A stretch of 64,000 nucleotides of DNA, taken from NCBI GenBank assembly GCA_002811645.1, contig PDIP01000067.1, forward strand, positions 178,550-242,549, written 5' to 3'. The DNA comes from Corallochytrium limacisporum Hawaii. Its lineage: Eukaryota > Protista > Pluriformea. The translations under genes were made by a program, and so were the position numbers. The notes below the pieces were generated by a model. It made no database searches and was not told where the DNA came from. It worked only from the letters and a program-made list of their open reading frames with translations. Shown in pieces: positions 18,016-41,102 of this stretch (positions are counted from its first letter, which is position 1; each line of letters begins with the position of its first letter).

Positions 18016-19854
18016 ATGAAACTCATGGAGACAATAACTGCCGTGGCACTGAGTGCAGCTGTGTGCCTGGCAAACCCATTCGCGGAGTCTGGAGGTGGGT
18101 ATGATGACGATCTACCTGACGACAACGATGAAATTGACCGTGACGTCCGGTTCCGCGTGGACAATCGCTGCATTGTGATGAAGGGATGGAATCAAAGTGC
18201 CACCCGTTACCTTCATGAGCCCATTAGCGAAGCTTACATGTTCCAGCTAGGCTGGCTCGGTATACCCCATGAAGTCTACTCCTACGCGGGGGGCGGCAGA
18301 TATCTGCAGCGTCCAGACCCCTTTGCATACCACCACAATACCTTCGGTAATGACGACGGCTCCGAAAACCCACTCCCGGTGTGGTGGAGAGACCCGAGCT
18401 TTTCTCTGCTCACCGGTCTCGAGCACGAGGAAGGCTGGGGACGTTACAGCTGCATCATCCTCCTCCCGGATTGTGTCATTCAGGCTGCAGAGTACGAAAT
18501 CATCTTTGACTACGCCGAGAAGTATGGCGCTCGCATTGTCTCCTTCAAGACCGAAGTCTCAACATACGTCACCGGGGCTGCCGCCACCAATACGGGTGTG
18601 CCTATGGCGGACGCTGCACAATTGAAGTTCACTGACTTCGGAAAGGAGATTTCAGGCGCATTCGACATATTCCATGACGGAACGGAGTATGAATTTGACA
18701 TTAGCACACCGGACGGGCAGTACAGATCCCCCGTCAGGGTCACGGACGATCTTCCAGAGGAGGGTGAGCGGCTTCAGGACAAGCCCCGCTCCATTTCCGT
18801 TCTTGAGACACCTGACGGCGTTTCTCTCATGACTTACCACGTCTTGCGCAAGAACGTCGAGATTCTGGGAGTCTGGACTAACCTGCCTTATTACCAGCAG
18901 GATGCCTGGCCTCTCTTCTTCACCATCATGGATTGGATGCTGCGGGGACACTGGACCGGTTTTCGTCGCATGTACCTCCACGATTCCATAACCAACTACT
19001 TCGAATTCCCTGACGTACGGTCGCCACTCTGTGTAAGGCTCGCCGGCTTCTGCGGCAACGGTGGCGGTCGCTTCAACATTGAAATTGGTGACTTTGACCC
19101 GTACCTGCAGTTCCCAGACACTAACTATCAATGTCGCTGTGCCCAGTGCTTCTGCGACACAGACCCTGATTTGGGTGTGGACTACACGTATGACGATAGT
19201 GAAAAACAGAACCAGTGCGAGCCTGTCGCCACCTTTGAGTTCAACTCTAGCTACGATCTGATTGGCATCGACCTGTCCATGTTGGACAGTGACGCTTGCA
19301 CAAAGTTCTACTTCTCCGTTACCGGTGACCTGACCGAGCTGACCTTCACCGACGACTCCAACGGCGGAGCCACCGTCGACGGCATCGAGTACGGTATCGA
19401 CAGGAACTACGAATTCCCTGTATCTGCCGGTTCTGGCCACATCTCCTTCGCCGAGGACGGCCCCGTATTCAACTACCGCAACAACACCCTCCGCCGCCCT
19501 GTGATTCCCAGGACTTGCAACATGCACTTCGATGAGGATGGCGATTGCCCGGATGGATATGAGCGCGATACCGACAAGGATGAAACAGTTTGCTCAGATA
19601 CTTGCCCGGATGTATGTTGCAAGGAGGTCACGACAACTACTACCACAACCTCCACCAACACCCAACCTGACCCGACATCCACTTCCACTTCCACTGGAAC
19701 CGACTCTGGCACTGATGATGAACCTGCGGACGACGAAGAGGACGGCGACTCCGATGGATCCACAGGGGACGGAGGCGGTGCTGCCGGCGTCTCTGCAAGC
19801 CAGAGCTTGATCCTCGCCACCGTGCTGGCCGCAGTGGTTGCCCTTGTGGCTTGA
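18016..19854 (+). CDS. Secreted GPI-type surface protein with Agd3/CBM87-like N-terminal domain, Cys-rich region and Thr/Asp stalk
   Basis: Signal peptide. LGWLGIPHEV, GRYSCIIL, IFDYAEKYGARIV and DWMLRGHWTGFRRMYL resemble fungal Agd3 motifs. Poly-Thr stalk and hydrophobic tail GAAGVSASQSLILATVLAAVVALVA. Confidence 0.8.
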   Translation: MKLMETITAVALSAAVCLANPFAESGGGYDDDLPDDNDEIDRDVRFRVDNRCIVMKGWNQSATRYLHEPISEAYMFQLGWLGIPHEVYSYAGGGRYLQRPDPFAYHHNTFGNDDGSENPLPVWWRDPSFSLLTGLEHEEGWGRYSCIILLPDCVIQAAEYEIIFDYAEKYGARIVSFKTEVSTYVTGAAATNTGVPMADAAQLKFTDFGKEISGAFDIFHDGTEYEFDISTPDGQYRSPVRVTDDLPEEGERLQDKPRSISVLETPDGVSLMTYHVLRKNVEILGVWTNLPYYQQDAWPLFFTIMDWMLRGHWTGFRRMYLHDSITNYFEFPDVRSPLCVRLAGFCGNGGGRFNIEIGDFDPYLQFPDTNYQCRCAQCFCDTDPDLGVDYTYDDSEKQNQCEPVATFEFNSSYDLIGIDLSMLDSDACTKFYFSVTGDLTELTFTDDSNGGATVDGIEYGIDRNYEFPVSAGSGHISFAEDGPVFNYRNNTLRRPVIPRTCNMHFDEDGDCPDGYERDTDKDETVCSDTCPDVCCKEVTTTTTTTSTNTQPDPTSTSTSTGTDSGTDDEPADDEEDGDSDGSTGDGGGAAGVSASQSLILATVLAAVVALVA

Positions 19855-20309
19855 GACCTCTAGGACAGAAATATAAAAACATCATCTCATCAGCATTCCA
19901 CGCATATTCAATACAGTACAGCCATCCTTTCAAACCCATTACTGGTTTTGATTCCCCAAACTCGTGTTTTGTCACAAAACGAGGACGCAGCATGACTTGC
20001 AACATGGCACACGATATGTCCATGGCGGCCATCCGTCCTTTGGCATATCCGAAAGTCTTTTCTCACAAAAGGTTTCTCTTTATTCGTTTGAAACTTGGTT
20101 TTTGGCCGGGCCTCGGAAAGAACCCCTTTTTTTTTGAAATTTTGGGGAAGAAAAAAGAAAATACTGGGGAAAACGGGTTGTTGTGTTTGCAAAGGAAAGA
20201 AAGAAAGAAGTTAAACGTGAGGAACAGAATACGTCGCCCTGGACGTTTGGCATCATGGATGAATGACAAAAATTGGTTCTGTTTCTCTTCCGCCAATGTA
20301 CTCTCCACC

Positions 20310-22241
20310 TCAGTACGTGGTACCCAGGTTGAGATGGCCGTTCATGCCGGCAAACTTGCGATCAAAGTCATTGCCGAGCTTGGACTGGAACCAGCGTGTT
20401 TGCAGAGGTTCGTGCACATGCTCCGACTTGCTGCGCATATACAGGACCATAATCTCAAGGTTCAGGAAGTCTGGTCCGCTGATCACTGGCCTTTCGCTGT
20501 CACCACGGGTTTCCATTTCCACGGTCTGGGGCCAGAAGAATGTCGACGAGTCACTGATGTCTTCGTGGCGGAATCCATTGGGGCCAATGAAACTGATCAC
20601 GTACCGTCCTGTCGGTCCCGTGTTCTCTGCAAAGTGTACCAAAAAGGTTCCCTTCTTGTGTCCCAGCAGCTTGTACTCTGCGGCTTTGTTGGAGGTCACA
20701 GTCGGATCGAACCAGCTGTTCTCATGCATGAAACTGCGCATGCGATTCAAGCAGCTCTCCAAGGGGCTGAACCAGCGGCACAGCTGGTCAAAGCGCACAC
20801 GGTGGACCACGGGGTTCTGTGCCGTCGGATCCGTGCTCACCAGGTATCTCAAGAAGGTCCGGTCAATGTCCTTGAGCTCCATCATCTGATTCAGCTTCGT
20901 GCACATGTGGTCCTCAAAGCGGCGGTAAAACTCTTGCAGGCTCATTTCCTGATTCTGGCCAAAGAGTAGATATGCCTCGCTGTTAAACATGTCATTGAGA
21001 AGGTGCGAATTGTCGCCCATGAATCCGCCCATGTTTACATCCTGACCACTATGTTCTGCATCTTCTGTTCCAAACATAATGTCATTGAAGTTGAAGTTCA
21101 TGTCAACGTCAAGATTCGCGTTGCCAAACATGTCGCTGTTGCCGCCGGCGTGTCCATTGCCGTTCATACCGCCGTTGTTAAAACGCTGACGGTTCGGGGA
21201 ACCACCTACGGGCGCTCCGTTGCCACTGCTCTGGTTGGCATTACCGTTGCCTTCGTTCTTGAGGAAGTCATCCAGACCGCTCGCACTCTGGCGAGCAGCC
21301 ACGAGCGCGTTCCACAAACTGGAGCCTTCGTTGAAGGAATGGGCACCCATGGCATGCGGGTTGGCCATGCCAACTCCGCCAACGGGTGCTCCACCCTGGC
21401 CGAAGGGATTGCCGCCAGGGCCTCCACCCATCATGCCACCGGGGCCTCCCATGCCACCGGCGCCACCAAAACCTCCCTGTGCACCGCCGAAGCCACCACC
21501 GAACCCTCCGTGGCGGTTCACGGGCATGCTTCGGGATGCCATTCCATCACCGAGGAAGAGACCAGCCATGCCGGTGGAAGGTGAGAATGAAGTGCGGTCC
21601 TGCCAGCTTGAAGTCTGCAGAGCGCTCACCGATGGTGCAGCAATGGAGCCTTCGATGTCGGCACAAACACCGAATAGGGCATTGTCCAATTTGTTGCAAA
21701 ACAAAAACACATCATGCGTTGGATGGGTTGACTTTGTGGGGAAGCAGCGGTTACGTTCCTCATCGCTTCCAAACGCTTCCGTGAGAATCTGACGTGAAAT
21801 GTGTTTCTTGTAGCAATGGTCATCCAGTTTTTCCTTAATGGCCTTGGCAATGTTCTTCGGAGAGCGGTTCCTCACACCATGCTCCGGCTGGTCGTCACTC
21901 CACTTCACCGTGTCGGGATCCAGTCCGAGCAGGAAAGCGGCCACTTTGAGGCAGTCGTGCCAAGTCACAAAACCACTGCCATACAGTTCTGGTGGGATCA
22001 TTTGCATGTCACTGCACTTGTTGTCCTTGCACCGTTTGCATTGTTTGTTTTCTTTCCTATGGTCCTCCACAAAAGATGCTTTCAGCAAGCTCAGATACAG
22101 ATGCTTGCCTCCCGTATGTTGGTATTGAATGATCTTTCGGGGAGATTCATTGCTCCAAGGGTAGGAGTACGTAATGTGCTCAACTTGCAAACCGTTTGCA
22201 AGAGCCAACGGCTGGCTGTTCATCGGCACAAAGTCTCCCAT
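20310..22241 (-). CDS. SH2-domain protein with N-terminal MedA/DUF7082-like domain and Gly/Met/Asn-rich linker (candidate transcription factor)
   Basis: C-terminal SWFDPTVTSNKAAEYKLLGHKKGTFLVHFAE...GRYVISF is SH2-like and is preceded by Cbl/SHK-like VRFDQLCRWFSPL. N-terminal WSNESPRKIIQY, FVTWHDCLK and DVFLFCNKLDNAL parallel MedA motifs. Confidence 0.8.
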   Translation of the reverse strand: MGDFVPMNSQPLALANGLQVEHITYSYPWSNESPRKIIQYQHTGGKHLYLSLLKASFVEDHRKENKQCKRCKDNKCSDMQMIPPELYGSGFVTWHDCLKVAAFLLGLDPDTVKWSDDQPEHGVRNRSPKNIAKAIKEKLDDHCYKKHISRQILTEAFGSDEERNRCFPTKSTHPTHDVFLFCNKLDNALFGVCADIEGSIAAPSVSALQTSSWQDRTSFSPSTGMAGLFLGDGMASRSMPVNRHGGFGGGFGGAQGGFGGAGGMGGPGGMMGGGPGGNPFGQGGAPVGGVGMANPHAMGAHSFNEGSSLWNALVAARQSASGLDDFLKNEGNGNANQSSGNGAPVGGSPNRQRFNNGGMNGNGHAGGNSDMFGNANLDVDMNFNFNDIMFGTEDAEHSGQDVNMGGFMGDNSHLLNDMFNSEAYLLFGQNQEMSLQEFYRRFEDHMCTKLNQMMELKDIDRTFLRYLVSTDPTAQNPVVHRVRFDQLCRWFSPLESCLNRMRSFMHENSWFDPTVTSNKAAEYKLLGHKKGTFLVHFAENTGPTGRYVISFIGPNGFRHEDISDSSTFFWPQTVEMETRGDSERPVISGPDFLNLEIMVLYMRSKSEHVHEPLQTRWFQSKLGNDFDRKFAGMNGHLNLGTTY

Positions 22242-22926
22242 CGTTGCTGTTCCTTTTGTGTAAAGCGCCCAGCTGTCAGCGCGTATCTAGAGGCTTGTGT
22301 TTCTGTTGTGTCTCTTACGAGTATTAAACGATCCAAACAAATATCTCTTTGTCTTGTAGAAAGAAGTATTCAATCGACCTCTTCCTTGCGCGAGGAAATA
22401 TACTTGTTTACATCACTAACGAAACGCCAATGAAAATTACACCATCTTGTTCTTTGCGTCAGTGCACTTCTTATCGCCTGTTCGTCTCTTCTCCCGCTTT
22501 TGGTTTTCGCTTTAACGATTGGAGTCAATCTCCTTGTCACAGGGTAAATCCAAATATGGACTAGTGAATCTCTCAGCTGCGGGGAAAAAAGTCTCCTTGT
22601 CTCTCCCACTTACGTCGATCAAAAGACTTCCTTGTTCCGTTTTCAGTCGCTTGCCCAAAATTCACTGCAAAGCAAAGTTTCAGCGTTTACTTATACGCAG
22701 ACCGTATTGGTTTGTATTCCTCAATACCGCCAACAATTGTCGTGAGTAGATGAGAACGTTCAATGTGCGTAGCATTGGGTGCTACATTTAAAGTAGCTCG
22801 ATGTGCAGAACCAGAGCCGCACAATAGTTTGTTATCTATCCGGGCCTAACATGGATATCCACAAAACACACACTCATTGTCTTCAAACATTTGGCAACTG
22901 CACATGACTCAAAAGGAAAGCCACCA

Positions 22927-22928
<2 letters not shown>

Positions 22929-22988
<60 letters not shown>
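22929..22988. repeat. (AC)30 microsatellite
   Basis: Uninterrupted AC run. Confidence 0.95.
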
Positions 22989-22995
<7 letters not shown>

Positions 22996-25900
22996 AGGAA
23001 CAATGCAAACACACCGAACGCAGCACTCCCCCCTCCCCGGGCGGGCTTTCACAAAAAGGCCAAAGAAATGTACAGCAAAACACAAGGGAAAGCGACTAAT
23101 AAAGGCCGGCCGCGTTCCTTTTTCTTTCCTTCCCCTTTTTTCCCTTTTTTTTTCTCTCCTTTTCCTCTTCCTCGGCGGGGGCGTACACCGTCATACACAT
23201 CCTCCCCTTCTCTCACCCGCTGCGCAGAATCCCTTCCCCCATATATTTTAAACTGTCTTCTTTTCACACACATTCCTTTTCCCGACTATTCCTGAGTACA
23301 ACCATGTAGGAGGACAAAAAGGTACGAAAAAAAGTAGGGTCTCGCTCTCTTGTGTGAGTGAGTGAGTGAGTATGTGAGACGGCGTGAGGTGTGGCGCATC
23401 GGTGTGGTCGACGGGAGAGTGTCAATCCGATTCGTCATGATCAGTACTTAATATACTAACAGTTTTTGCAAGAATTCCCGCACACCTTCAACTTCCGGCT
23501 TCTCCCTTCGCCGCCACATTTCACACTTCTGTCACGTCCCATTTTTCCTTTTTCTTTTTTGGGCACCGTGTGCTCGTGATGGTCCAATAGTAAATGTACT
23601 ACAAACACCGTACACAACTCAAATACACATCCCCCCAGCCAGAACACAAACATTTTCCTGCGCAGAATAATCTCGACGACACTTGGGCCCTCTGGTATTA
23701 CCCAATCTGTGCCTAACTGCACACCCCCTCCCCTCCTCCTTGCCTCGGCCCCAAACGGGTGATCTGTGGTTTTCCTAGATAATGTATTGGATGCGCTCGG
23801 CCAACGTTGTGGACTTTGCAAGCCCCCCTTCGCAAAAAAAAGGATTGATTATTGATTCCTCCCTCCCTCTCCTCTCCCCCGTCCGCCACCTCCCCCCCCA
23901 AAAAAATCCCAAACGAGCATTTTGTGCGTTGGCAAAAAAATTTGATCAGCAGACCCTTGCTGCCCCCCCCCCCTCTCCTCTCCTTTACCATTGCCCATTC
24001 GTCCCCCGTCGTTTCAACCTTTCGTTTCTTCGTTGTCTTCTCTCCCTCCCCACCCACCCCCTCCCCTTCTTCGCTCTCTCCCCGTTTGCCCAAACTGAGC
24101 AGGAGTGGGGGACGGCAGAGGGAGGGGATCGCGAAAAGAGGAGCGAGCACGAAAGATCCGACATAAAGGCAAGCGTCAGGAGATGGTATGACGGACAAGA
24201 GAAGTCATATCTATCGGGCTCTGACATCCATATATTGAGTACTTAAAGAGAGCAGACGCTGTTGCGTTGGAGTTGTTGGGCCCATCTTTTTGGTGGTTAT
24301 GGATTTTCAACTCTGCCTCAGTTTTCTCCTGAATCTGTTCGTGCCCCGTTCGGGCCCCTCCAATGCTTCTATCCAACACGAACTGGGAAAGTCCCACCAA
24401 GGTGGCAATATGTTGCAGTTTTCCCAGTTAGCTGGACATTTGGTAGGTGAAAGTATTACGCAAGAGTACGTGCCAGACCTATCATACCTACTGAACACGG
24501 TTGGGGATGTCCCGCTTGGGTGGGTAGCGTGTGAGAGGAGATATTAAAAAGAAAGAAAATTGGTGGTGGTGGTTTCCCATAGGATACCGTTTACCTACAT
24601 TTTATTCTGCATCCGGCTGGGAAAAATAGCAAGTTGATTAGCATTGCGGATCGTTACACCGATTCCTTCCTTCAGGGGCGCCGTGCGTTCGGACTTCACC
24701 GGTCTGTACATTTCCTATACTGAGAGAAAGGGCTTAGATTCGCGAACGAATGGACAGTGGAACCTTGCCCCGTTTGTTCCCGAGTCCATTACCTGCTGTC
24801 CTTTCGATTCAACAGCAGACCACCGATTTTCCAGAAAATGTGCGGGCGTCAAGTACTGAAAGCATAGAGAATTACACCAACCGCACAGGAAAGGTTCGGG
24901 AATGAAATAGAAATAGAGAGTTGAAGTGAGGGATCCTTCGACATTGTTTCCGCTTCGCGTCACGAGACAGGAAATATTTGGTATTCCGCAATGGTGACAT
25001 AGGCTCGTATGGTGTCATCTCCATATATTTTGTACTGGAATAAAAAAGGATGGGGGCCTAAATGATACCCGCTAATGAGACCGGATCCCGAGGCGAGTGT
25101 GTGAGGGGCGGGGGTGCCGTTTAAACTCTCCTCCCCCGTGGGTCCGGGTGGGAGCCGAGCTTGGCGAGAAAGAATTGGTGCGCCAGCTACTACTGCACTC
25201 CCCACCCTGTCCTGTGTCCCCGAAATCGGAGCTAAATCTACCTCAGATAGGTTCACCACTTTCCATTTTGATAACAGTGCGATGGTTGAAATACACGGTA
25301 CTTTTCGTTCTGATCCGTCCCGCTGTTGATGATTATCGATGGGCCAAGTCATCGACGAACCAGACCCTTTTGTTTCTTTCGAGGTCCTTGGCTATGGCTC
25401 GAGTGTGTGGATAGCCGTCTCCCTCGGCGACTGCAATTCTTGTTTCTGTCCTTGTCTCGGTTTCCTTATCTTGTTCTTTTCCTTTGCGGTTGAATACAAA
25501 TTTCCAGAAATAGGGTGTGAATATACAGCGGAAAATCTGTGGAGAAAAAAATTAGCATAGAAATCGGGAACGCAACACAGAGACTGCTCCCGGTTGAAAA
25601 CAGCGAGGGAACACAGACAGAACCGTAGAATTGTCCCGAGAAGGCCTACCCACTAAAATTTTTGCTATTATTTACTATAGGAGACGATTTTTAGCAGCGT
25701 CACCCAATTTTTTATCTTCTGCTCGGAGCAGGATTGCACGAAACTGTGATCAGTACAGTCACACCAGTGACCGATCGAAGGGGGAGACACGCCGTTCATA
25801 AAATTTGAATGGCATAGTATTATTATCGAAGGCAACATTGAACTGTGTAGAGGGAGGGTCAGGAACGTCTTTGGTCCAAGGATCATAGAAATTTAAGGGT

Positions 25901-27843
25901 GGAAAAAAGGAGAGTCCCTGAGTGCGTAATACTTAATGTACTTAGATCTCTTAGCTAGTTTGAATCATCACCACAGTAGGGTTCAGATGATATAATTTCC
26001 ATCGCGGGATGTATGTTGATCAATTTGACGGGGACGGCAAAAACGTTAGTGCATTCACTATAAATTCTTCTGGTCCATTGCGACTTTCAATTTTTTGAAG
26101 CGAGCAGAAACTTTTCGTTCCGTTATTGCATATTCTTTCTTTATTTTATTTTTTCGTGTTGGACAAACCACAACAAATGCAACTGTAGAAGTTTCAATAT
26201 CTTCGTTTTCAATAATGAATGTGTGCATAAAGCTATACGGGTCTGCCAAAAGCTATGCAAGCCCCACTGCGTTCTCCATCTCCCCCTTCTCTCCTGACCC
26301 AAGGGAGACGATAGGGACCGTACACAATTTTTCTTGGGAGTCATTTTTGTACTGAACCAGAAAGCAAAGATTTCTTCGCAGGAGAGTGGGGGAGGGCACA
26401 CTCCGTTTGTGTACGTACATTACATACTGCGCACCGCCCTCTCTTCTTTCCCCGGCCGGCGAAAACGGGACGTGGTTGGCTGCATTTGCATGACGAAAGC
26501 AGTTTTTCCTTTCTCTGGTTTGCTGCTCCTTCTCTTTGGCTTTTTGTTGGAGAGTGGTCCCTGTTTCCCCCTTCCCTCCGCACACACAACAACAAAGCCT
26601 TCTTTGGCTCTGTTGTGCAAAATAGCCCGCATTCTTGGAGGCTGCGCCTCACGAAAAGAAAAACCAACCTTCCCCTTTTTAGCGCCTCGCCTCCATCGCC
26701 TCCCCCGCTCCTTATTTGGATTTGATTCTTCAATCAGAGATACTAAAGTATGCCGATGTACCTAACGTAGCAAGTTTTGCTGACAATTAATCAACACCTA
26801 TTGATTTGATTCCCCTTTCTCAGCCTTTCTCTCAGCTCTCTCGCTCTCTCTCTGTGCGCCCAGTGTCTGCCCTTTTGCCTGCGCCTCTTCGCTCCGATTT
26901 GCTCTTCTCATTTCTCCCTTCTTCTCCCCTTGCGCACCAAACACACCCCAACCACTTCGCAAAAGAGTTGGTTGGTGTTTCGTCTTTGTAAACGCGGAAA
27001 AAAAAAGAGTTGAACAGGCGCGCGGCGGGCGTGTGGGTCCCCCTCCCCCCCTTCCGGGGGCCCTCCTTCGCGGCCAAAGAAAAGAGTGGGTCCTCTCTCC
27101 TTGCCGCTTCATCTCTTGCGCGCGCGGGAGGGGTGGGAATTCTTGGTATTTTCGTGTTGGTTGTGTATGTTTGGGACCCACTTTGGCGTTTTGGGTTGCT
27201 CCCAAATTCCAACAACTCTCGCACACCGTCTTATTACGCGCAATGGGCACCTTTCTCTCTCTTCCCCCCNNNNNNNNNNNNNNNNNNNNNNNNNNNNNNN
27301 NNNNNNNNNNNNNNNNNNNNNNNNNNNNNNNNNNNNNNNNNNNNNNNNNNNNNNNNNNNNNNNNNNNNNNNNNNNNNNNNNNNNNNNNNNNNNNNNNNNN
27401 NNNNNNNNNNNNNNNNNNNNNCCTGTCTCTCTCTCTCTCTCTCCACCACCCCAAGGAAGCGGCGGCGGTGAGAGTGTGTGCGTGTGTGCCAAGAAATCAA
27501 AAGCAATTAAATATTTGTGGCGCTAAATGTGCCGATTCTAAATTTTCATAATGAATGTTAGGGAGCGGCTGCAAAGTCTGAAACGGGAATAAAATTTACC
27601 AACTGGGTAGGCGCAAACACCGCCTCGACGGGATGGCTTTGGGGCCAAGAAGAAAAACTTTTCTTGAACCCCACTCTCCGTCCGGACAGTCAGACTCTAC
27701 ACCGAAGGAAAGGGGGAAAGAAAAGGAAGGAAAAGAGAGAGAAGCAAGAGAAAACGAACAAAATGACTTAGGCGAGAAGTGAGGGAGAAGCACACACGGG
27801 GGAGTTGGGTGGCCCGCTTGCTCCGAAGACAAATTCCCAAGCA

Positions 27844-27844
<1 letters not shown>

Positions 27845-27906
<62 letters not shown>

Positions 27907-28039
27907 NNNNNNNNNNNNNNNNNNNNNNNNNNNNNNNNNNNNNNNNNNNNNNNNNNNNNNNNNNNNNNNNNNNNAAGTGAGGGAGAAGCACACACGGGGG
28001 AGTTGGGTGGCCCGCTTGCTCCGAAGACAAATTCCCAAG

Positions 28040-28090
<51 letters not shown>

Positions 28091-28107
28091 GAGAGAGAGA
28101 GAGAGAG
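27845..28107. repeat. (GA)n microsatellite tracts on both sides of an assembly gap
   Basis: GA runs at 27845-27906 and about 28042-28107. Confidence 0.85.
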
Positions 28108-29748
28108 GCAAAACGCCTCAATTGTTGCCTCTAAGACCTGCTGCTGCTGCTCCTCAAAGGGAGGGAGGGGAGGTTTAGAGTTGGGTTTTCCGGCAGTGAC
28201 GCGGCGCCTAGAACACTGTGAGGAAATCGAGGGAGAGTTGTGTGATGGTGCGCGCACGAAGCGAGGTTTGTATAACGCGGTCCCCACAAAGGACGGAGCA
28301 ACCCACCATGGTGAACGAGATACAGAAGCCCGTCGTAAAACGTGCCAAAGGTGTGCGAGAGAAGGCCTTGGGACCCCCCCCCTCCCCTCTCCTCCAACTT
28401 CCATCCCTTCCCTCTCCCCGCACTCCGGAGTCAGTCCCAGCTTGCTCGGGCATTTTCCTTTGAGTGTGTGCTGTGCAGCTTCTTCGTGTGGTTCTTGCGG
28501 GTATATACTCAATCTCTCTGTCTCTCTGTCTCTCGCTCTCTGTGTGTCTGTGTGCATGTATGTGTGCTACGATTAGTACACACTTTCTCGTGACCTAAGA
28601 AAGTCAAAAAGGAGATCTGTTGTTCTGTCCAATCTGCCTGCCGGAGAACAGTCGTCTGCTGCCCCGCCCTTCCCCTTCCGTGCCAGGCATTTGGAAGGAT
28701 GGAATGGTGTCTGTGTTTCTGTGCACTGTTTGGATGCCAACATGCAGCAAGCGGCATGAGCCGCAAAAAGGAACCGTTGGCCACGCACCACACACACCGC
28801 GACCCAAAGCAAACACACTCGGTAGAGAGCGACTGGTTTGTTTGTGACAGGGCGAGCAGGGATCACCGGAGCTTGTGCCCACATGCGCGCTTATGTGCAT
28901 TTGGCTGCCTAAAAAGTTTCTCCACTCCGTGCGCTTCTTTGCTCTTCTTCCTACAGGGGTCCGCGCAGCATCGCATCCCCGGACCGTCTGCTCTCGTCGG
29001 GTTCATGGTACAGTGCATGTGCCAAGACTCCTGCATTCCGGTAATATGTCAGCTTTTGCGACAATCAGTGACCCTAATCCATGGAAAGGGCACCCCTTTA
29101 CGTGTTCTTCCCCAAATCTATGTCTACGTAATGTTTTCCGAGTACACACTCCCGCTGCGCAGTCTAGGGACGAAAGCATCGGGCAAGGATGCGGAATTTT
29201 TTCTCCTTCGCTGGGTCAGAAACCCGCGCTAGCGACCAATACGCGCAGTCCGTGTTCAGGCAACCCCCCAGCCCCTCCTCCCCCGCCTCGCCCCGGGGGA
29301 GGGGAGGGGATGTGGGCCAGTTCCAGCAGCAAAAAATTAGTTGTCTACGAGTGGCATCCTGGATGCCGAGTGGCATGACGGTACGGGTACGGGTACAGGT
29401 AACGTACAGATGTAAGTACGTGTCCCGCTGCAGCAGCTTTGCGTATTCCGCAAAACAATCCCCCTAATGTGATGCCTCGCATTGGCTGGAAGTGCTCGGG
29501 ACAATTGTTGCGGTGGGGATCATTGCGGATGGACACGGGCAACGACGCGAGTTTGAAACCATCAGGTTAAATGAAGATGTAGCGGACATGTGTGTAGGAT
29601 ATCAGAGCCGACGACGACGACGGGGTTGTGACACAGTGTGTCTACAAAGAAAGTGTAAAATGTATTTCGGCATGTGATGGATGTTTAGTTTTCCCTCAGT
29701 GCCATCCTACCTCAACAGGTGACATCATCCAACGTCTCACAGACTGCC

Positions 29749-32700
29749 TCATGCAGCCGTATTGATGTAGTTGTCAAAGTCAAATTCTTGATAGGACGGT
29801 ATGTAATCACCGTTGAAGATGCAGTGTAGAGCCATGTCCTCAATTCCAGGAGTGTCATGGTTTCTGTCAGTGATCAAATTAGGTAGAAGCTTAGGGGTTA
29901 TGACAAAAGTCTGCGACCTACTCTCGGCACTCGAGCTCACCTCCATGACCTTCTGGAAGACCGCTCGCTCATTGTCAGGGTCCATGCCCTGGTTGATCTC
30001 ATCCACGAGACGGAATGGGCAGGAAATCTGACGCTGTAATGCGAGCAGATACAGCATTGTGGACACGGTACGCTCACCACCGGAGTGGGTGCCTGCGTTG
30101 AGTGCCTGTTCGGGCTCACTGTTTCGGAAGCGAACCATGATTTCAATGCCCCACATCATGACGTCCCTGTTGCTCATGTTGAGACGGACCGAACCGTTAC
30201 AATTAATGGAGATGAAGAAACGACGAAAGTCCTCGTTGATACCGTCTATGTGGGCCTGCATGGGCTCCAGCCACTCGCGTTTGGCCGCCTCGAATTCCGC
30301 TTCTGAGTTCTCGTTGCTGGCGCGGGCCTCTTCCAGTTGCTGCCTCACTGCGGCGAGATCAGTTTCCACCTGCTGGTGCTCCCGAATACGCTCTTGGTTG
30401 GGTTGTTGGATGTGCTCCAATTCGTTAGATACACGGCGATACTGGCGATTGGCTTCTTCAACATCGGGTCGAAATTTGACGGGATCCTCGTCTGGCAGAC
30501 CAGCAATTCTTTCCTCCGACACCTCGTGTTCACGCAGGAGCTCCCGCAACGACCGCTTCTGCGATCGGAACACTCTCTTCGCTTCTTCCATATTGCTCCT
30601 AAAACTCTCACGAACCTGGGCAGTCGTGCCATGCTCCGCCTCCATTTCTCGTAGTCTATTGCTCAGGACCACACGTCGTGAATTTAACTGCTCCATCTCC
30701 AGGGCAGTCATGGCAGCCGATTCAATGGCAGTCACCTCAGCTTCGTGGGCCTTGACGGCTGCGTCGACAGCCTCTAGTTTGTTGGGAAGCGCCTCAACAA
30801 GTTTACGGCGCAGGCTCTGTTCTTGGCGATCTGCGTCTGCGAAACTGTTCTTGTGGGAGGCCAAAGTATCTTGAAGACGCTGCAGATCCTGCTGCAAAGT
30901 CCTGCGTTGGTTTATAGTTTTCGTCATGGAACGCAGATCCGCGTTCAACGGCTCAAGCTTCGCGTCAATCTCCCTCTCCTGCTCCAAACACATTGTATGC
31001 TCGGTCTCCTTGGCTTGTATGCCTTCTAATGACCTATCCAGAGCTCCCTTGCAGCGCTTCAGCTGCTCTCGGTCCACGCTCTGATGGAGGAACTGTGCCC
31101 TCCGGGTATAAGCAAACGTGTGCTGGATGGCATCATCAACAACCGACTTCTTCATCTTGACGGAAATTCCTGGGGCGTAGAAATGCTTACATCCGTTTTC
31201 GATTAGCCTCGGAGCCAGTCGATCCACCGTTGCCATGTCAATGTCCGTCTTCTTGATCAGAATATTGGATATGTTGCAGCGCACGATGAGTGTCTTGATC
31301 ACATCCCCTGCTGCCGTCATGGAGCGTGCGAGCGTGGTGTCGAAACCCAGCGCCTCTATTTCCTCCTGCGAAAGCTCCTTCCTGTTTTTGCTCTGCCAAT
31401 CGTTCCATTCAGCCGTGTTGGGAGCCATGAGAATGTTAATGGGGATTTGGCTTCGTTCACGGATTTCAGTCAGCAACAAGTCACGATCACGAGTATCAGT
31501 GCACACAAAAGACTGCAGGTGCCTGATCGCGACGGCACTTTCTACCATGGCAGCCATGGGGCCATCTACATTGAGTTCGACAGCCAGCGGCAAGAAAACC
31601 TTGCCGCGGAGACGCGATCCATCTGCAAACCGCTCACGGTACATGTCAATCGCTCGGGTGGTCTGTTCAAAGGCTCTAATGCTGCGCAAGAGCCTGATGC
31701 GCTGTTCTTGAGCGTTATCCGCATCCTTGTAGTCCCTGGCAAGTCGCTGGTGCCGGTTTCTCAGGTTGGCAAGCTCATTACTGATCTGGGCACCTTGGGT
31801 CTTAATTTCGTTGCGCTCGCTTTGATACTGGGTCACTTCCTGCTTTTTTGCCTGGTATTCCGGCATCATGGGTTCCGGATCAGGGGCGTTGGCTAGCTTG
31901 TCTTCGATCTGGGATATGTTCTTTTCCGTCTGATCAATATTGGATTTCAGTTTACGCTTTCGCAGCTCGCTTGTCTCCAGATCGGATCTAATTATCTGCG
32001 TTTCCGACTCGACTTGCTCCACCTTGTTTGCTTTAGCCCGGGCGTCGGCACCTGCCTTTTGGCGCCTCCTGTTGGCCTCCCGCCATGTCTCATGAATCGT
32101 ATGATACTCCTGCTCAGCCAGGGCCACGGCCTCCCGTAATGGGGCCAGTTGCTCTTCAATATCCTTATAGTTTTGTTCAAAGTGCTGATACTCCTCCACA
32201 GCCTGATCATATCTATCCTTGGACTGCGACAGCGTCAAGTAGGTGGCATGTAGGTGCAGCCACTTCACCTGCTCCCGTAAATCATCGAGGCGCTCAGCCC
32301 TCTGTACGTGTACAGCTAGGGACTCGAGTCGTCTCTCCAGAGCTCGGATCCGCTCCTCCATACCCTTCAGACTCCCAGCGTTGGCATTATTTTGTGCAGC
32401 AACGTCTGCAAGATGCCTTTGTTTATCAAGCAAATCTGGCTCCAGCGCAGTCTGAGTGCTCCGAAGCAATTCATGGGGTTTCTGACGCGTGAACTCCGAA
32501 ACCTTCTCTTGTGGTAGGCACTGGCACAAATTGTCCATATCAATGTTCAAGCGATATCTTGCTTCCTTCACAGCACGCTTGGTGCACTGGCTCCCATTCA
32601 TTGTGTACACCATCTTGTTGCTCTGATCAATGGTGCAAGTAATTGCTAGGATTCCCTTCCTTTGGGAAGAATCACGGATATCAAACTCGATGACAGCCTT

Positions 32701-33087
32701 TCGTTCTCCACTGCGAACGAAGTCCTTGGCCTGCATATTGATGGATTTTCGCTTGATCACGTCAATGCTGTATCCGAGGGCCAAAACCATTGCGGAAACT
32801 ACAGATGACTTGCCTGCACCGTTGGGTCCAATCACCAGATTCAGTTTGGGCTGCGGATAGAATTGTGCTTCCCGATACACTGTAATATTCTTTAACTTGA
32901 TCCGCACAATCTGTCCATCCCTAAAGTCACCCAAAGGGGTGGGATTTCCGCATCGTCCCACCATGAGGTGTTGTTGCCGATAATCGCACAGTGATATTGA
33001 CCTTCGTGACTTGAAACGAATGTACATTGACGTGTCACTTTCGATCCCGACTCTTGTATACCGCACCGGCATTCCACATCTCGCCAT
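29749..33087 (-). CDS. SMC5: Structural maintenance of chromosomes protein 5
   Basis: Walker A LNLVIGPNGAGKSSVV, SMC5-typical NLCQCLPQEKVSEF, long coiled coils, signature HSGGERTVSTMLYLLALQ and Walker B PFRLVDEINQGMDPDNER. Start is ATG 33087 or, more likely, 32964. Confidence 0.96.
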   Translation of the reverse strand: MARCGMPVRYTRVGIESDTSMYIRFKSRRSISLCDYRQQHLMVGRCGNPTPLGDFRDGQIVRIKLKNITVYREAQFYPQPKLNLVIGPNGAGKSSVVSAMVLALGYSIDVIKRKSINMQAKDFVRSGERKAVIEFDIRDSSQRKGILAITCTIDQSNKMVYTMNGSQCTKRAVKEARYRLNIDMDNLCQCLPQEKVSEFTRQKPHELLRSTQTALEPDLLDKQRHLADVAAQNNANAGSLKGMEERIRALERRLESLAVHVQRAERLDDLREQVKWLHLHATYLTLSQSKDRYDQAVEEYQHFEQNYKDIEEQLAPLREAVALAEQEYHTIHETWREANRRRQKAGADARAKANKVEQVESETQIIRSDLETSELRKRKLKSNIDQTEKNISQIEDKLANAPDPEPMMPEYQAKKQEVTQYQSERNEIKTQGAQISNELANLRNRHQRLARDYKDADNAQEQRIRLLRSIRAFEQTTRAIDMYRERFADGSRLRGKVFLPLAVELNVDGPMAAMVESAVAIRHLQSFVCTDTRDRDLLLTEIRERSQIPINILMAPNTAEWNDWQSKNRKELSQEEIEALGFDTTLARSMTAAGDVIKTLIVRCNISNILIKKTDIDMATVDRLAPRLIENGCKHFYAPGISVKMKKSVVDDAIQHTFAYTRRAQFLHQSVDREQLKRCKGALDRSLEGIQAKETEHTMCLEQEREIDAKLEPLNADLRSMTKTINQRRTLQQDLQRLQDTLASHKNSFADADRQEQSLRRKLVEALPNKLEAVDAAVKAHEAEVTAIESAAMTALEMEQLNSRRVVLSNRLREMEAEHGTTAQVRESFRSNMEEAKRVFRSQKRSLRELLREHEVSEERIAGLPDEDPVKFRPDVEEANRQYRRVSNELEHIQQPNQERIREHQQVETDLAAVRQQLEEARASNENSEAEFEAAKREWLEPMQAHIDGINEDFRRFFISINCNGSVRLNMSNRDVMMWGIEIMVRFRNSEPEQALNAGTHSGGERTVSTMLYLLALQRQISCPFRLVDEINQGMDPDNERAVFQKVMEVSSSAESRSQTFVITPKLLPNLITDRNHDTPGIEDMALHCIFNGDYIPSYQEFDFDNYINTAA

Positions 33088-33258
33088 GGTATCCACCGTA
33101 CTGTACACAAGAGCATACCAACATGCTAGTGCAATAATCCTGCCTCACAAAACCACTAAGAAAGAAAACCCCTCGAAATTGTGAGGCAGTATGTCTGAAC
33201 TCAAGAACCGGATCATTTGCCTGTGCTCAGCTCGAGCGGGCTCTCCCTGGCGCCCATT

Positions 33259-33266
33259 TTTCGCGC
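33259..33266. promoter_or_regulatory. E2F consensus site TTTCGCGC upstream of SMC5
   Basis: Perfect TTTSSCGC match in the divergent SMC5/eIF3k intergenic region. Confidence 0.5.
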
Positions 33267-33658
33267 CCACAGCCGGCAGGCTAATTTATATCCGGACTTT
33301 CAATACTTTCAGTTTTCGGGAGTCCTGAGGAGGAGGCGAACTGTGGCCCTCCATTGTTTCATTCTCTGCCACTCTCCACCACCTCTCTACCCCTCACGTG
33401 GCCCAGAGGGTCAACACCGACCAGTCCGCGTTTTTGTGTGCTGCACAGTTGGCAGGCATTCCCACTCACGTTGCAAGTGTAATCTTTCCAAGAGTACTCA
33501 ACTGCAGCCTTGAGATCGGAAATACCACCCTTCCGCTTGGGCATTTGGGCGCAGAACGAGCCTGTGCGACGGTTCCTGCTACGATTAGTCGACTTTGTTA
33601 CTTTTGGCAATACCATTTTGTCGGGGTAAAACTAAAAGCTATTTTGGGTCAGTAGAAA

Positions 33659-33799
33659 GTAAGATCGCGTTTTGTAGTGGATACGATTTGAAAAGTGGTA
33701 TCACATCATTGGAGAAGGATTTTGTAAAGAGACACAGCTGAGAGATATCGGCTTTGGGGCTTCGTATGCAAATCAACGGGAAGTTACTGACCAACACAG
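33659..33799 (+). other. Putative 5'-UTR intron of eIF3k
   Basis: GTAAGA donor at 33659, TACTGAC branch at 33785-33791, CAG at 33797-33799. Confidence 0.55.
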
Positions 33800-33822
33800 A
33801 ATAGACATAAGTTACGACAACG

Positions 33823-34461
33823 ATGCCAGACGCAACCATTGGATCCATCGACCGGTACAACCCGGAAAACATTGACCTCCTGGAGGAGCACGTGAACACT
33901 CTTGCAGAGTCTCAGAGCTTTGATATTGAGGCATGCATGGCTGTATTGAAATTGTACCAGTTCAATGTTGACCGCTTTAACGTTAAAGTCGTGGTGAAGA
34001 TCCTTCTAATGGCTATCATGCAGCTTCCGGACCCGGCCTTCATGCTCTGTCTGTATCTCCTGCCGGAGGATCAGCTCGCCAACGAACACATTGGTAAGGC
34101 CATCTACTTACAGCAGCTTCTTGAGACTTGCAATTTTGACCAGTTTTGGGAGGAGGTCAAGTCCTGCGAGAACGAGCTACTGGATGGCGTCAAGGGATTC
34201 GACGACCATGTTCGCATCTTCATTGAGGGTGTCGTAACTCGCAGCCATCAATCTATCGAGGCAACCAACCTGCGGACGTACCTGCACATGGAGGAGGCCC
34301 ATTTCCAGGGCTATGTGAAGGATCACCCGGAGTGGATCATGAAGGACGGTGTCCTGCACTTCGGTAAAGATATGGAAGCTGAAGTCAAGCCCAAGAATAT
34401 TGTTGAGCGTATCGATTTCAACGACCTCACAAACATGATGGCATCGTCCATGCGCCGCTGA
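33823..34461 (+). CDS. EIF3K: Eukaryotic translation initiation factor 3 subunit K
   Basis: IDRYNPENIDLLEEHV, AVLKLYQFN, LLETCNFDQFW, GFDDHVRIFI and KPKNIVERIDF. Confidence 0.96.
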   Translation: MPDATIGSIDRYNPENIDLLEEHVNTLAESQSFDIEACMAVLKLYQFNVDRFNVKVVVKILLMAIMQLPDPAFMLCLYLLPEDQLANEHIGKAIYLQQLLETCNFDQFWEEVKSCENELLDGVKGFDDHVRIFIEGVVTRSHQSIEATNLRTYLHMEEAHFQGYVKDHPEWIMKDGVLHFGKDMEAEVKPKNIVERIDFNDLTNMMASSMRR

Positions 34462-34615
34462 CCCAGGCAAAGGCGCTCTTCATTTACAGTTCCAATTCCA
34501 TGTGACATAGTAATCATATACAGCAATGAATAATCAAGAGTTTAGGCATCAATGGATTGGTGAGATTGCACATGTGACCAACAGTTTCTCGTTTATAGCT
34601 TCTGCAGCTGTGTTC

Positions 34616-37600
34616 TTATGCAACGGCAGATGTTGTTTGGATAGCTGCCTTCTGCATCCTGGCCGCGGCCGCTGATGTGGAGGCGTACTGGAAAGTCTCA
34701 TAGCCAACAAAGCGGAAGCGGTTCCATTTCAGGATCTGGTCGACCTTCTGATGGCAGTATGTCAGAACATCGCGTAGACCGGTCTTTTTGGCCATGATCT
34801 CGGCTTGGATGCGATGTCTGGGGTCGCCAAGCTCAGACAGGCTCGCCTCGATATCTGTGAGATACAAAAAGTAGCGCAGCTGGTTGTACAAGCGGAAGCT
34901 GGAGTATTCCCAGGAGATCGTACCGAAGCATCCGGGAACTATACAGGTTCCCGGCTTAATGCTGACCTGGCGCGTGCGGTGGCTGCAACTTGGTTCGTCA
35001 CAGACCATCCATCCCTCTCCGTAGGCCTTGTAGTGGCGACGAATCTCACTGTTGAGCACGTTGATCACGTAGGTGTCCTCAAAGGTGGTGTCACACTGGT
35101 CATTGTTGCATGTCAGACCGTGCTGCAGCGCACCGGTGGTTTGGGATGTGCGGAAAGCACCCTTGAACTCAGTGATTTCCTGGCAAGTGTTGCAACGCAG
35201 GAAGACTTTGTCGACATCCTTGAAACGCTCCGCAGCGCTGAGGACGGCGCGTGCTTCGCTGCCCTCCTCACGCTGGTATGCATGCAGAAACTGCTTGGAA
35301 TCCAGACCGAGACATTCAGCCACCTGACCGGCGTCCGTGCCCGCAATGGGTTCAACCAAACGGGACACCACAGCATGCAGTTGCTGCTTGAGATAGTATT
35401 GTTGATCGATGTGGAGGCCAAGCTTCTTGACCTCAGAGGGATGGTAGGCCCGCAGGGCGGCGCTCTGCTTCGTCTGCTCCGCGGTGTCTGCCGCATTCGG
35501 GTCCTCTCCCACGGCGGTTGTGCAGATAATGTACTCAATAGCATCACCCGCACGCTTGTGCTCACCGCGGCTCTTCATGCGCAAAGCAACCTGCACATGG
35601 GGCATCGACCGAGCATCTGGGTACATATCTGGAGATTTAGTCAACGACTTAGTGATGACATACCGGTCGAGCGGAATGCGGTCCTCGGCGACATCGTTTC
35701 CGACCTTGCGCAGGTAGGCATGAATCTCGTCGACTAGGGACTCCCTGTCCTGCGCGGTCAAAATCTGATCCAAAACATTGCCACCTACATTGACAGCAAT
35801 ACCGGACCAATCACGACGCACGATATCAATACCCTTGACCTCACGTTCTGTAGTAAGACGGTGTTCCTTGGTTTCAGGATCCACACCCTTATCCACAAGC
35901 TTCAAGGCGGCGTACTTCTTCTTCTTCAGCAAAAGCATGGTTTTGAAGACACCATCTATATCAATCTCCAGTTTCTTATGGCGCTTGTTGATCAGCTTCT
36001 TCAGCTCCTGTCCCATACTCATGGTTTTTGCATAGTCGGTGATCTGAGTGTTGATCATAATTGAGTCAGTATCCCCATAGATGACCGACAGATTGAGCTC
36101 GCTCTCTGCCACGTTTACAGTTTGCTGCAGCAGCTCACGACCCATTTGAGTAATGACCTCCGCCAGAGGCTTGGCATAGAAACGGGCATGACCGAAACCA
36201 AGACAGCCATACATGGAGTTGCACATAATCTTCAAGGCATATTGACGAACATCGAGCTGACTAAGCTTCAGAGGGTCATTCTCTCCCTTCATCATCCTCT
36301 TGACCTCCCGACGACGAGAGACAAGATACTCCAGCACACTAGGCAGGACACCGACATCCACATTAGAAGCAGGTAGCTTTACTTTAAGCGCGTCGGGGTC
36401 GCCATCAGCTGCTTCCTCCGCAAGACGCACAGCCTCCTCTCCTTTGGGACGCTCTACGGTGGTGAAGCAAATGTTGAACTCTTGGATAATGGACGGGTAT
36501 AGCGAGTTGAAATCGAGCAGCAGGATGAACGTGTTATAGAAACCTTTCTTTGGCTCCAAGACCAACCCACCAGAGTACTGAGGCTTCTTTCTTCCAGCGC
36601 TTTGGCCCTTTGCCTTGGCACGAGATCCACCATCATCCTTTTTGTCATCCTTCTTGCCAAAAAATTTGTCGGGCACAATATAGTTACGACGATGGAACTC
36701 GTGCAGCAACATCCACTCGTTACGCTCGGCACGACCACCGGTGAGGGTTCTGGACCAAATGTTACCGGCCAGAGTGGTGAGCTGGCGCGACAGAGGAATT
36801 ATCTGCAACTTGTTTGCCAGTAGGAAATTGATCGTCGCGTCTTGATCAGCGTACCTAGCGAGATTAATCACGGCTTGCGCTGAAGCATATAAGTTACCTA
36901 TGTTATCCAACGGAATCGACTGGCGGCGTACGCCAAGCTCTACGGAAGCCAATTCCATCATGCTGTAGGTTTTCAAACGAGTTGAGACCTCCCTCGAGAA
37001 CTCGTATGTGTCCACCAAGAGGCGACCGGCCATGACCTGCTTGGCTCCCCATTTGGCCTCACCACCACCGGTGGTGGAAAGGTGAGGCATCTTGGACACC
37101 TGAAGACGACCCAGCCTGCTCCAGAAGGACACGTTGTGATGCTTCATTCTATGGAGGAGAACATCCAAAGTGAAGCCAAAGAAATTGTGAGCAATGATCA
37201 CATCAGGGTCAACACATTGAATATTTGCCACCAGATGGGACAGCAGGGCGGACTCCCTATTGCAGACTTGAACGGTAGAGCCCATTCGCTGACGTTCCAG
37301 CTGCTCCTTGAGATCCGATGGGAATTGCTGGCCAGCAGGACGGGATACTAAGGCAAACCTACTGAATCCATTGGTCAAATTCTGCATGGTACCGTCTATG
37401 CTTACTTCGTCATGAACAACCCCCGCAACGGCGAGGACCTCGTGAGCATGGCTTTTGGGATCATGACGACTCACAACATTCAAGCTCACCACATTCAGTG
37501 GAGGCGGGGGAGGGCACGCATCCGGGTCGATCTTTGAAATGGTACCGTTACTATAAGTCGGTATGGTGCATTCGAATTTGCTGTAGCCAAACTTCGATGG

Positions 37601-39172: not shown

Positions 39173-39426
39173 AGCGTTCTCTATATATTCCTCGGTCTGT
39201 ACAGGTCCGCCTATATCCTTTAGGATTGCGCTTACATGTCACTGACCCTAGTGGAGAAGTTCCTATATAGTATTTTCTTATGTACCCTTTAGTTGCCGCC
39301 CATGCTAACGCGACAAAAACAAGTCTTGACGAAGACATCACGGGAACTACACCTTTTGTGCTCACCCGCCCAAACTTGCAAGTTTGCAGCTCCAAGGGGA
39401 CTCTCGCGGATCCTTAGCTTTGGATT

Positions 39427-39434
39427 TTTCGCGC
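39427..39434. promoter_or_regulatory. E2F consensus site TTTCGCGC upstream of POLA1
   Basis: Perfect match 255 bp from the POLA1 ATG. Confidence 0.6.
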
Positions 39435-39955
39435 TCGAAAGTTTTGCACCGCCGTCGACTGGGAGGGTATTGATTCCCAGTTTCAGACCGCCTCACATTT
39501 TGCGGTTCATTGTCTATTGAACACTGGCAAATCGCATTGATTTTTGGCTTGTGAAAATTGAATCAGCTGGCCTATTATGAACGCACGAGAAAGAGTGTGG
39601 ACGAGTTTGATTTAGGTAGTTGCAATCGAATCAACTGTGATGCGAAAGGCAATCTGCTCTACGGTGTAGTCTTGGTGCCCCGAGTCTCTCAGCACGGGGG
39701 GAGAATGAAGGTGCAAACCTCCGATCGCCCCGCGGGGAGGGGGAGAGGTGCGAGGCTCACGGTCTATCTTTGTCAGACGTAGAGCTACTTTAACGCCGTT
39801 GGATATGTGAACAAAGAATCAGATGCCATAAGACAGGCAGCGGATGCATGTCGAATCATTCAACGAGTTCAGCCTGCAAACGCTGGTCTACATCCTGGAC
39901 GATGTAACGAGAAAACTGATCCGTCATACTTAGAAACAGATCAAACCAACGCGTC

Positions 39956-40914
39956 ATGGCATTGGAATTCTGCAAGGGACTGGGCACGACTCTGAACGCT
40001 GATATCCTTATTGATGAGACATTTCAAGAGCACCATAATGAGGATTCGAAGTCCTGGATCAGCGTCAAGGCCGGGGTCCAGGGGGGCCAGGACTACTACG
40101 AGGTCGCCGTTCAGGAGATGCTCGCGACCTGAAGAGGTCTCTGACTGGTCGGGTTTCCTCAAGGCTATATACACTGTCCATGAAGGACGTAATTGACAAG
40201 AGAGGCGAGCAAATTTATGTAGCCGAAGTCAACAGACTCTCACGGACAGAATTCAAGGTGACGAGGAAAGGTACGGAAGATCAAATTATGAAAGATGGCG
40301 AAGGTATCATTGCGCAAGAGGAGCCTGTGACTCCTCTCATCACAGCCGTGGGTGATGTGATACTACAACGACTGTTGATCAAACAGATTTTCACCAAAGA
40401 CGAAGAAATCTTTAATTTCAAGGCGTGGAATGTGCGGCCAGTGACTCTGGGTCCATAATTCGTCGTGAGAAGAGGAGCGATGATGCCCACAATATGGTCT
40501 CTACCAAATTGTGGGGTATTGCTGGAAGTGACAGATGCTGAAGACGCTGTGTATGGCAAGTCTGCTCTAAGCCGGAACACTGTTGTCCAAGAGAACGGCG
40601 AGGTAAGTTCTGTTGCCACGAAGGTGGCTGAGGTCAGCGTCAATGATTCCACAGCTGTGCCTGCAGCAACGTCCAAGAAGACCGATCTCGTTTCCCTGAG
40701 CGAAGTTCCTGATGCCTGGGTCGAAGATCTGGAACTGCTGAGTCGTTTCGTAGACAAACGCACTGCTTTAAAGCTTGACCATTTGGGCTATCTTCAAGGG
40801 CATCCCGAAGTCAACCAAATGCTCGCCGACTTCACTGAACTAGTCTTATTGAAGAGGCCGCAAAATGTCATAATGTTTGCAGCGGACTACTTCAGCAGGC
40901 TGTCATCTACATGA
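39956..40914 (+). pseudogene. CATIP: Disrupted CATIP (ciliogenesis-associated TTC17-interacting protein) homologue
   Basis: ATG 39956 frame MALEFCKGLG...IDETF ends at TGA 40130-40132. Homology continues in another frame (SLTGRVSSRLYTL...LITAVGDVILQRLL), meets an in-frame TAA at 40456-40458, then gives the RIIa-like C-terminus WVEDLELLSRFVDKR...YLQGHPEVNQMLADFTELVLLKRPQNVIMFAADYF. Confidence 0.7.
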
Positions 40915-41102
40915 TCTAGTATCGACTCCGATCACAAACCTATTACCTTTACCCTCCGATTCCACTCTGTGTTTTAATTGCTTGATTGCATGTTGCATGT
41001 ATTACTGTTTATGTTTGTGTGTGTTTGGATACAGAAGCTGCAACCAGTGACGTATTGCAAGTGGAAGACTAGATGTTTGAAAAGGTTACGAAGCTAAGGG
41101 AC

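Follow-up and report, generated by a model that had tools for sequence, protein, structure and literature searches.

A single-copy gene of Corallochytrium limacisporum that probably encodes a new kind of gene regulator, with a predicted winged helix and an SH2 domain, rather than a STAT-style switch

The window analysed here is a stretch of 64,000 nucleotides from the genome of Corallochytrium limacisporum Hawaii (contig PDIP01000067.1, positions 178,550 to 242,549). On its minus strand, from 22241 to 20310, runs an uninterrupted open reading frame for a protein of 643 residues, with no intron on this reading; the four N-terminal motifs quoted in the original prediction were all found in it, in the order stated. 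The gene is present once in the genome (24,109,830 bases in 286 contigs), whether it is sought by its N-terminal or by its C-terminal domain, and the protein has an entry in EukProt. Contigs from a run that is probably RNA span 20203-22656 at high depth, without a single difference or joint, and none was found outside these limits; the RNA status of the run is a guess, and the contigs cannot fix the true ends or the strand. The cover fits an unspliced transcript, and the gene is probably expressed. Two minimal upstream open reading frames lie in the 5′ leader on the minus strand, at 22445 (Met-Val-stop) and 22413 (Met-stop). A third contig of run X1 (2220 nt, depth 530) ends on the 30-mer at 20857-20886 and passes into other sequence; the joint has no splice donor, the flanking stretch has no second genomic copy, and the contig is probably a chimera. 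The features of the locus are collected in Table 1.

The 7507 bp upstream of the gene (22242-29748) contained neither a convincing coding sequence in the list of open reading frames nor a match in an Rfam scan. About 7.5 kb of such DNA had been taken as a sign of a regulated factor. The length was confirmed, but it carries little weight as a sign, because a similar stretch free of coding sequence, about 6.5 kb long, lies upstream of the neighbouring gene at 18016. At 27596-28107, around an N gap, about 200 nt with AG microsatellites are duplicated, probably as an assembly artefact. The convergent neighbour (18016-19854, plus strand) encodes 612 residues with a signal peptide, a Thr/acidic stalk and a GPI-like tail, and has no Pfam match. 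Genes named by eye as SMC5-like, DNA polymerase alpha-like and ORC5-like are clustered on one strand at 29749-44443 (minus), and a 1716-residue protein encoded at 54195-59345 (plus) appears by eye to combine ankyrin repeats, a coiled coil, a protein kinase and a HECT-like C-terminus.

Table 1. Features of the gene and its surroundings, in window coordinates (aa, residues of the 643-aa protein)
Feature	Position	Strand	Remarks
Gene	20310..22241	-	643-aa intronless ORF; single copy; EukProt entry
Contig-covered span	20203..22656	-	about 415 nt of 5′ leader and 107 nt of 3′ trailer; no joints
Upstream non-coding stretch	22657..29748		reaches end of SMC5-like gene; contains microsatellites and two N gaps; nothing in Rfam
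N-terminal domain, aa 10-197	21651..22214	-	probably a winged helix of the Dachshund/Ski/INI1/BCOR type; nearest specific candidate MedA/DUF7082
Insertion of about 20 aa, aa 106-127	21861..21926	-	between helix 1 and helix 2; predicted to be missing from MedA by the structure-based register; almost unchanged in Syssomonas
Predicted helix 2, aa 128-142	21816..21860	-	putative recognition helix (role by analogy with PMC4509781); aa 127-140 unchanged in Syssomonas
Putative wing and last strand, aa 165-181	21699..21749	-	includes a 14-residue run identical in Syssomonas
Short tail, aa 198-232	21546..21650	-	motif in common with Syssomonas past the domain (by eye)
Low-complexity linker, aa 233-368	21138..21545	-	Gly/Asn/Met-rich; 32% G, 12% N
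Acidic-aromatic patch, aa 369-425	20967..21137	-	11 D/E, no K/R, 12% aromatic; putatively activation-domain-like
EF-hand-like unit, aa 426-505	20727..20966	-	precedes SH2; Cbl_N2 match at aa 447-501 under cut-off
Src-type SH2 domain, aa 506-612	20406..20726	-	degenerate phosphotyrosine pocket
His536 codon CAC	20634..20636	-	betaB5 position of the FLVR arginine; letters agree in independent runs X1 and X6
Tyr643	20313..20315	-	final residue; sole tyrosine C-terminal to SH2

An exhaustive HMMER search with residues 15-200 against 1.84 billion representative sequences returned a lone real relative of the N-terminal domain, an entry of 238 residues in EukProt, from Syssomonas multiformis (E = 1e-75, 61% identity), which we take to be the other pluriformean. 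Similarity continues slightly beyond the domain before the entry, which may be a fragment, stops. A repeat protein among the matches was treated as noise, as were matches under cut-off to PDCD2_C and SPMIP4. Nothing was found for the domain in Pfam, PHROGs, PDB-sequence, Atlas-feature or word-based homolog searches, and relatives were absent from the metagenome and viral contig scans. Genome scans with DUF7082, STE, Ski_Sno, Cbl_N2, Cbl_N3 and an alignment of fetched MedA sequences, run without a positive control, were also blank. A word search with the C-terminal region, which covered full-length proteins and is blind to fragments under 354 aa, returned only the protein itself. The N-terminal domain is known from two species, and its fusion to an SH2 domain from one.

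Conservation between the two species is highest at residues 61-71, which contain a CxxC, and at 90-106, 111-140 and 165-181, and the strongest of it coincides with the predicted helix 2 and wing. A CxxC-x4-C motif (residues 68-76; 22040-22016, minus strand) and further Cys and His residues are kept in Syssomonas; they form a possible zinc site, at the place where MedA has a conserved CxSC strand.

The original prediction had likened the N-terminal domain to that of the fungal developmental regulators MedA, Ren1 and ACON-3 (DUF7082); the family, PF23305, also takes in Acr1. MedA loci were fetched with a short degenerate pattern built on primers printed in PMC3503810, and the set was widened to 120 proteins. 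The fetched MedA was confirmed as DUF7082 with an E value of 6e-73, the one full-length MedA scanned matched DUF7082 only, and the motifs that the original prediction gave for MedA proved correct, being present in the fetched genes in the same order. Neither the 643-aa protein nor its Syssomonas relative matched the Pfam DUF7082 model (cut-off 27 bits). An HMM built from the 120 MedA sequences gave the 643-aa protein 0.6 bits, inside the range of shuffled sequences, and the Syssomonas relative -1.0 bits, neither of them significant. As the family HMM fails, the domain can be no more than a distant relative of MedA. Comparison with MedA by hhalign gave a probability of 7%, with pairwise P values of 0.001-0.006 and, in global mode, a score reached by none of 200 shuffles.

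The domain was also split in halves and aligned to MedA with a custom profile method, using 990 windows of real proteins as decoys. The first half of the 643-aa protein scored z values of 4.3-5.6 and was equalled by none of the 990 decoys, and that of the Syssomonas relative scored 2.6-3.6 and was equalled by 2-12 of them; 150 shuffles likewise failed to reach the first-half score. Because the idea had been chosen on the 643-aa protein itself, the Syssomonas sequence is the fairer test, and it gives modest support. The second half, which holds the last two motifs, resembled the decoys when placed in the register of the original prediction (z about 0.6). Sequence aligners choose another register for this half; it was rejected, as it drops MedA helix 2, aligns a predicted helix with a strand and finds no partner for the invariant wing block. 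The proposed similarity to DUF7082 is confirmed in part.

The two domains are further alike in the predicted order of their core elements, in having conserved blocks at equivalent places and in forming a globular domain amid low-complexity sequence. The 643-aa protein is unlike MedA, apart from its failure against the family HMM, in the insertion of about 20 residues after helix 1, an extra Cys cluster, a lower pI (7.7-8.1, near neutral, against 9.2) and the position of the domain, which is C-terminal in MedA and here N-terminal and combined with EF-SH2. Taken together we lean, by a little, towards a specific kinship with MedA. In Aspergillus fumigatus MedA the domain carries nuclear localisation; by the same account, from 2012, MedA itself still had no identified DNA-binding domain (PMC3503810).

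Structural models were compared with 48,161 chains. The MedA domain gave a confident model (pLDDT 91.5), whose best matches were Dachshund (Z 6.7, 95 of 99 residues aligned), SnoN (6.4), INI1 (5.8), Bqt4 (5.2) and Mbp1 (4.8), followed lower down by BCOR, Swi6 and BCORL1. The Z values are middling if taken singly; eight of the nine top rows belong to one winged-helix group (PMC4509781). Foldseek with the same model ranked Ski/SnoN first, below significance. The helix 2 and wing elements are invariant in the MedA alignment, and the model includes the extra wing helix that has been described as metazoan-only. No paper stating that MedA is a winged helix was found in the literature searched, whose coverage was incomplete and lay outside the entry texts of Pfam and InterPro. 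Members of the winged-helix group insert helix 2 into the major groove and the wing into the minor groove; Mbp1 and INI1 touch DNA through these two elements, INI1 weakly and non-specifically, and the Dachshund-like group has been reported from metazoans only (PMC4509781).

The model of the N-terminal domain was built from two sequences, without MedA, and was poor (pLDDT 43). Its core runs strand-helix-helix-strand-helix-strand-helix, as in the MedA model, and the predicted order agrees with the strand-strand-helix-helix-strand-helix-strand-helix layout of Dachshund/Ski/INI1/BCOR/Mbp1-type winged helices. Its 50 best chains included Dachshund (Z 3.0, 87 of 99 residues aligned, rmsd 3.4), BCOR (2.9), SnoN (2.6) and BCORL1 (2.6); every fold match was below Z 4, and phage adaptor proteins ranked above these four. 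Foldseek searches of PDB and viral structures and the Atlas and PDB fold searches were uninformative. Seventeen of the 50 structural neighbours recur among those of MedA, many of them matched along the same chain ranges, in a comparison that has no control model and in which many of the shared neighbours are promiscuous helical bundles. Several shared matches start at residue 82 of the model and at 69-72 of MedA (the FVT strand common to both), and end at about 186 and 156 respectively. These common boundaries favour the register of the original prediction, with an insertion of about 20 residues. The modelling makes a winged-helix fold likely for the domain. The domain probably shares that fold, extra wing helix included, with Dachshund/Ski/SnoN, the N-terminal part of INI1, BCOR-PUFD and Mbp1/Bqt4 (APSES/KilA-N); it differs from them all in having no Pfam match to any of these families, and none of them was found fused to an SH2 domain in the searches run. 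DNA binding is suggested by the predicted fold, since MedA had offered, up to 2012, no identified DNA-binding domain as a guide.

The same results bear on two other views of the domain. It is rather unlikely that it is a winged helix with no special tie to MedA, acting as a chromatin co-regulator or protein-binding module devoid of sequence specificity, as BCOR-PUFD, SnoN, Bqt4 and INI1 do. The failure of the DUF7082 HMM, the presence of BCOR and BCORL1 among the fold matches, the weak, non-specific DNA binding of INI1 itself and the near-neutral net charge of the domain would all agree with this. The first half, however, fits the extra N-terminal hairpin region of MedA above decoys, in a profile comparison confined to MedA, and the acidic-aromatic patch would be in keeping with a sequence-specific activator. 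Also unlikely, and a shade more so, is an unrelated, lineage-specific and possibly zinc-binding fold in a cytoplasmic SH2-type adaptor, its likeness to MedA being due to chance. A single small fold family supplies four of the top 50 matches of a model built without MedA, the order of elements agrees with MedA, and the Syssomonas sequence also beats most decoys; these results argue against such a fold, which would draw on the conservation of CxxC-x4-C and several other Cys and His residues, on the lack of any significant family, sequence or fold match, and on the finding that two incompatible registers each yield some identities, which suggests chance.

An EF-hand-like unit followed by an SH2 domain had been proposed for the C-terminal region. 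The SH2 domain was confirmed. Pfam recognised it with an E value of 5.5e-4, at 20.4 bits against a cut-off of 21 in the protein search and at 21.5 bits, above the cut-off, in the genome scan. Its elements line up one by one with those of nine other SH2 domains of the same genome, and the Atlas feature match of the C-terminus to the SH2 cluster was 0.91. Its C-terminal half is Src-type. The EF-like part is weaker: the sole Pfam match in residues 426-505 was to Cbl_N2 (residues 447-501, E 0.09-0.13, 13.3-13.8 bits against a cut-off of 22). The unit is nevertheless likely, though unproven, because Cbl_N2 is the family expected at that place. The arrangement recalls the Cbl TKB region (four-helix bundle, EF hand, SH2) in that a Cbl_N2-like unit stands immediately ahead of the SH2 domain. 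Unlike Cbl TKB, its Cbl_N2 match is under the cut-off and the pocket arginine is missing; Pfam matches to the four-helix bundle, Cbl_N3 and RING were absent from the 643-aa protein, and an uncontrolled genome scan gave no candidate for Cbl_N3.

At betaB5 the SH2 domain has His536, where the nine other SH2 domains compared from the same genome all have Arg. The letters of the codon agree between two independent runs. The pocket also has Asn at the Arg position alphaA2 and Ala at the Ser position betaB7. SH2 domains without the betaB5 arginine cannot use that residue to bind phosphotyrosine, those with His at betaB5 bind independently of phosphotyrosine, and the His-bearing SH2 domain of TYK2 binds its receptor in this way (PMC7530234). 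Dictyostelium STATb has Leu at the arginine position (PMC2906285), and loss of the arginine therefore does not exclude a role in transcription. The replacement at His536 thus has counterparts in TYK2 and RIN2 (His) and in STATb (Leu), as a functional analogy between different proteins.

The STAT-like logic of the original prediction is not borne out, because His536 replaces the arginine that binds phosphotyrosine; the other two pocket residues are lacking as well, the domain is Src-type, and it is followed by a single tyrosine, the last residue of the protein. The protein is like STAT in the order of a probable DNA-binding domain, a helical unit, an SH2 domain and a near-terminal tyrosine. It is unlike STAT in that STAT_alpha, STAT_bind and STAT_linker gave no Pfam match in it, whereas the genome's own STAT matches all three, and BLASTP of the SH2 region against the linker-SH2 of that STAT found no match. 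The complete STAT gene lies elsewhere in the genome (L015:1135-3237, minus strand) and encodes STAT_alpha, STAT_bind, STAT_linker and an SH2 domain with Arg. A STAT-analogous switch, in which a tyrosine kinase would phosphorylate the protein, for example at Tyr643, and an SH2-phosphotyrosine dimer would activate DNA binding, is very improbable: the position of EF-SH2 C-terminal to a probable DNA-binding domain, the terminal tyrosine, the Src-like and other SH2 proteins encoded in the genome and the precedent of STATb, a STAT without the arginine (PMC2906285), are outweighed by His536, Asn at alphaA2 and Ala at betaB7, by a Src-type domain dissimilar to the genome's STAT linker-SH2 and with no STAT_linker match, and by the absence of any residue after Tyr643 for a specificity pocket to read.

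The 643-aa protein would thus probably be a gene regulator of a new kind, not a STAT-style switch. The proposed joining of a DNA-binding domain to an EF-SH2 unit can be held with moderate confidence, as a probable winged helix most like MedA rather than as a member of DUF7082. The claim that no described protein has this architecture was upheld within the literature searched, of incomplete coverage: no paper there describes a winged helix with EF-SH2, and none mentions DUF7082. Dictyostelium CldA was considered as an earlier case of SH2 combined with a DNA-binding domain and set aside, as the paper shows a Clu domain.

The reading that we prefer, at a probability of roughly 0.55, is that of a nuclear regulator of transcription or chromatin, restricted to Pluriformea, with a winged helix and an EF-SH2 docking module that works independently of phosphorylation. 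The N-terminal domain would be a winged helix of the Dachshund/Ski/INI1/BCOR type, probably a distant relative of MedA, and would grip DNA or chromatin through helix 2 (residues 128-142) and the wing (residues 165-181). The Gly/Asn-rich linker and the acidic-aromatic patch may together act as a transactivation region that recruits co-activators. EF-SH2 would dock a partner, a dimer mate or its own protein without phosphotyrosine, much as the His-bearing SH2 domain of TYK2 does.

A bolder reading, which we regard as doubtful, would make this the first MedA-family DNA-binding domain outside fungi, tied to an EF-SH2 sensor through which a signal would control sequence-specific transcription. In that reading the signal would be phospho-Ser/Thr or an acidic peptide, with phosphotyrosine as a less likely candidate. 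If true, it would mean that a signal-to-gene factor was built independently beside STAT in a close relative of animals, and that the Dachshund/Ski-type winged helix predates the split of fungi and animals. Support so far comes from two species, with the fusion in one, and no homology score to MedA is significant. The architecture can be tested, because Corallochytrium can be cultured and transfected. For the MedA family, the model points to a helix and a wing as candidate DNA contacts, in a domain long reported to lack a DNA-binding motif, and suggests an older origin for a fold variant that has been described from metazoans only. If the preferred reading is right, the closest unicellular relatives of animals would contain an unrecognised transcription-factor architecture that inventories based on Pfam miss altogether.
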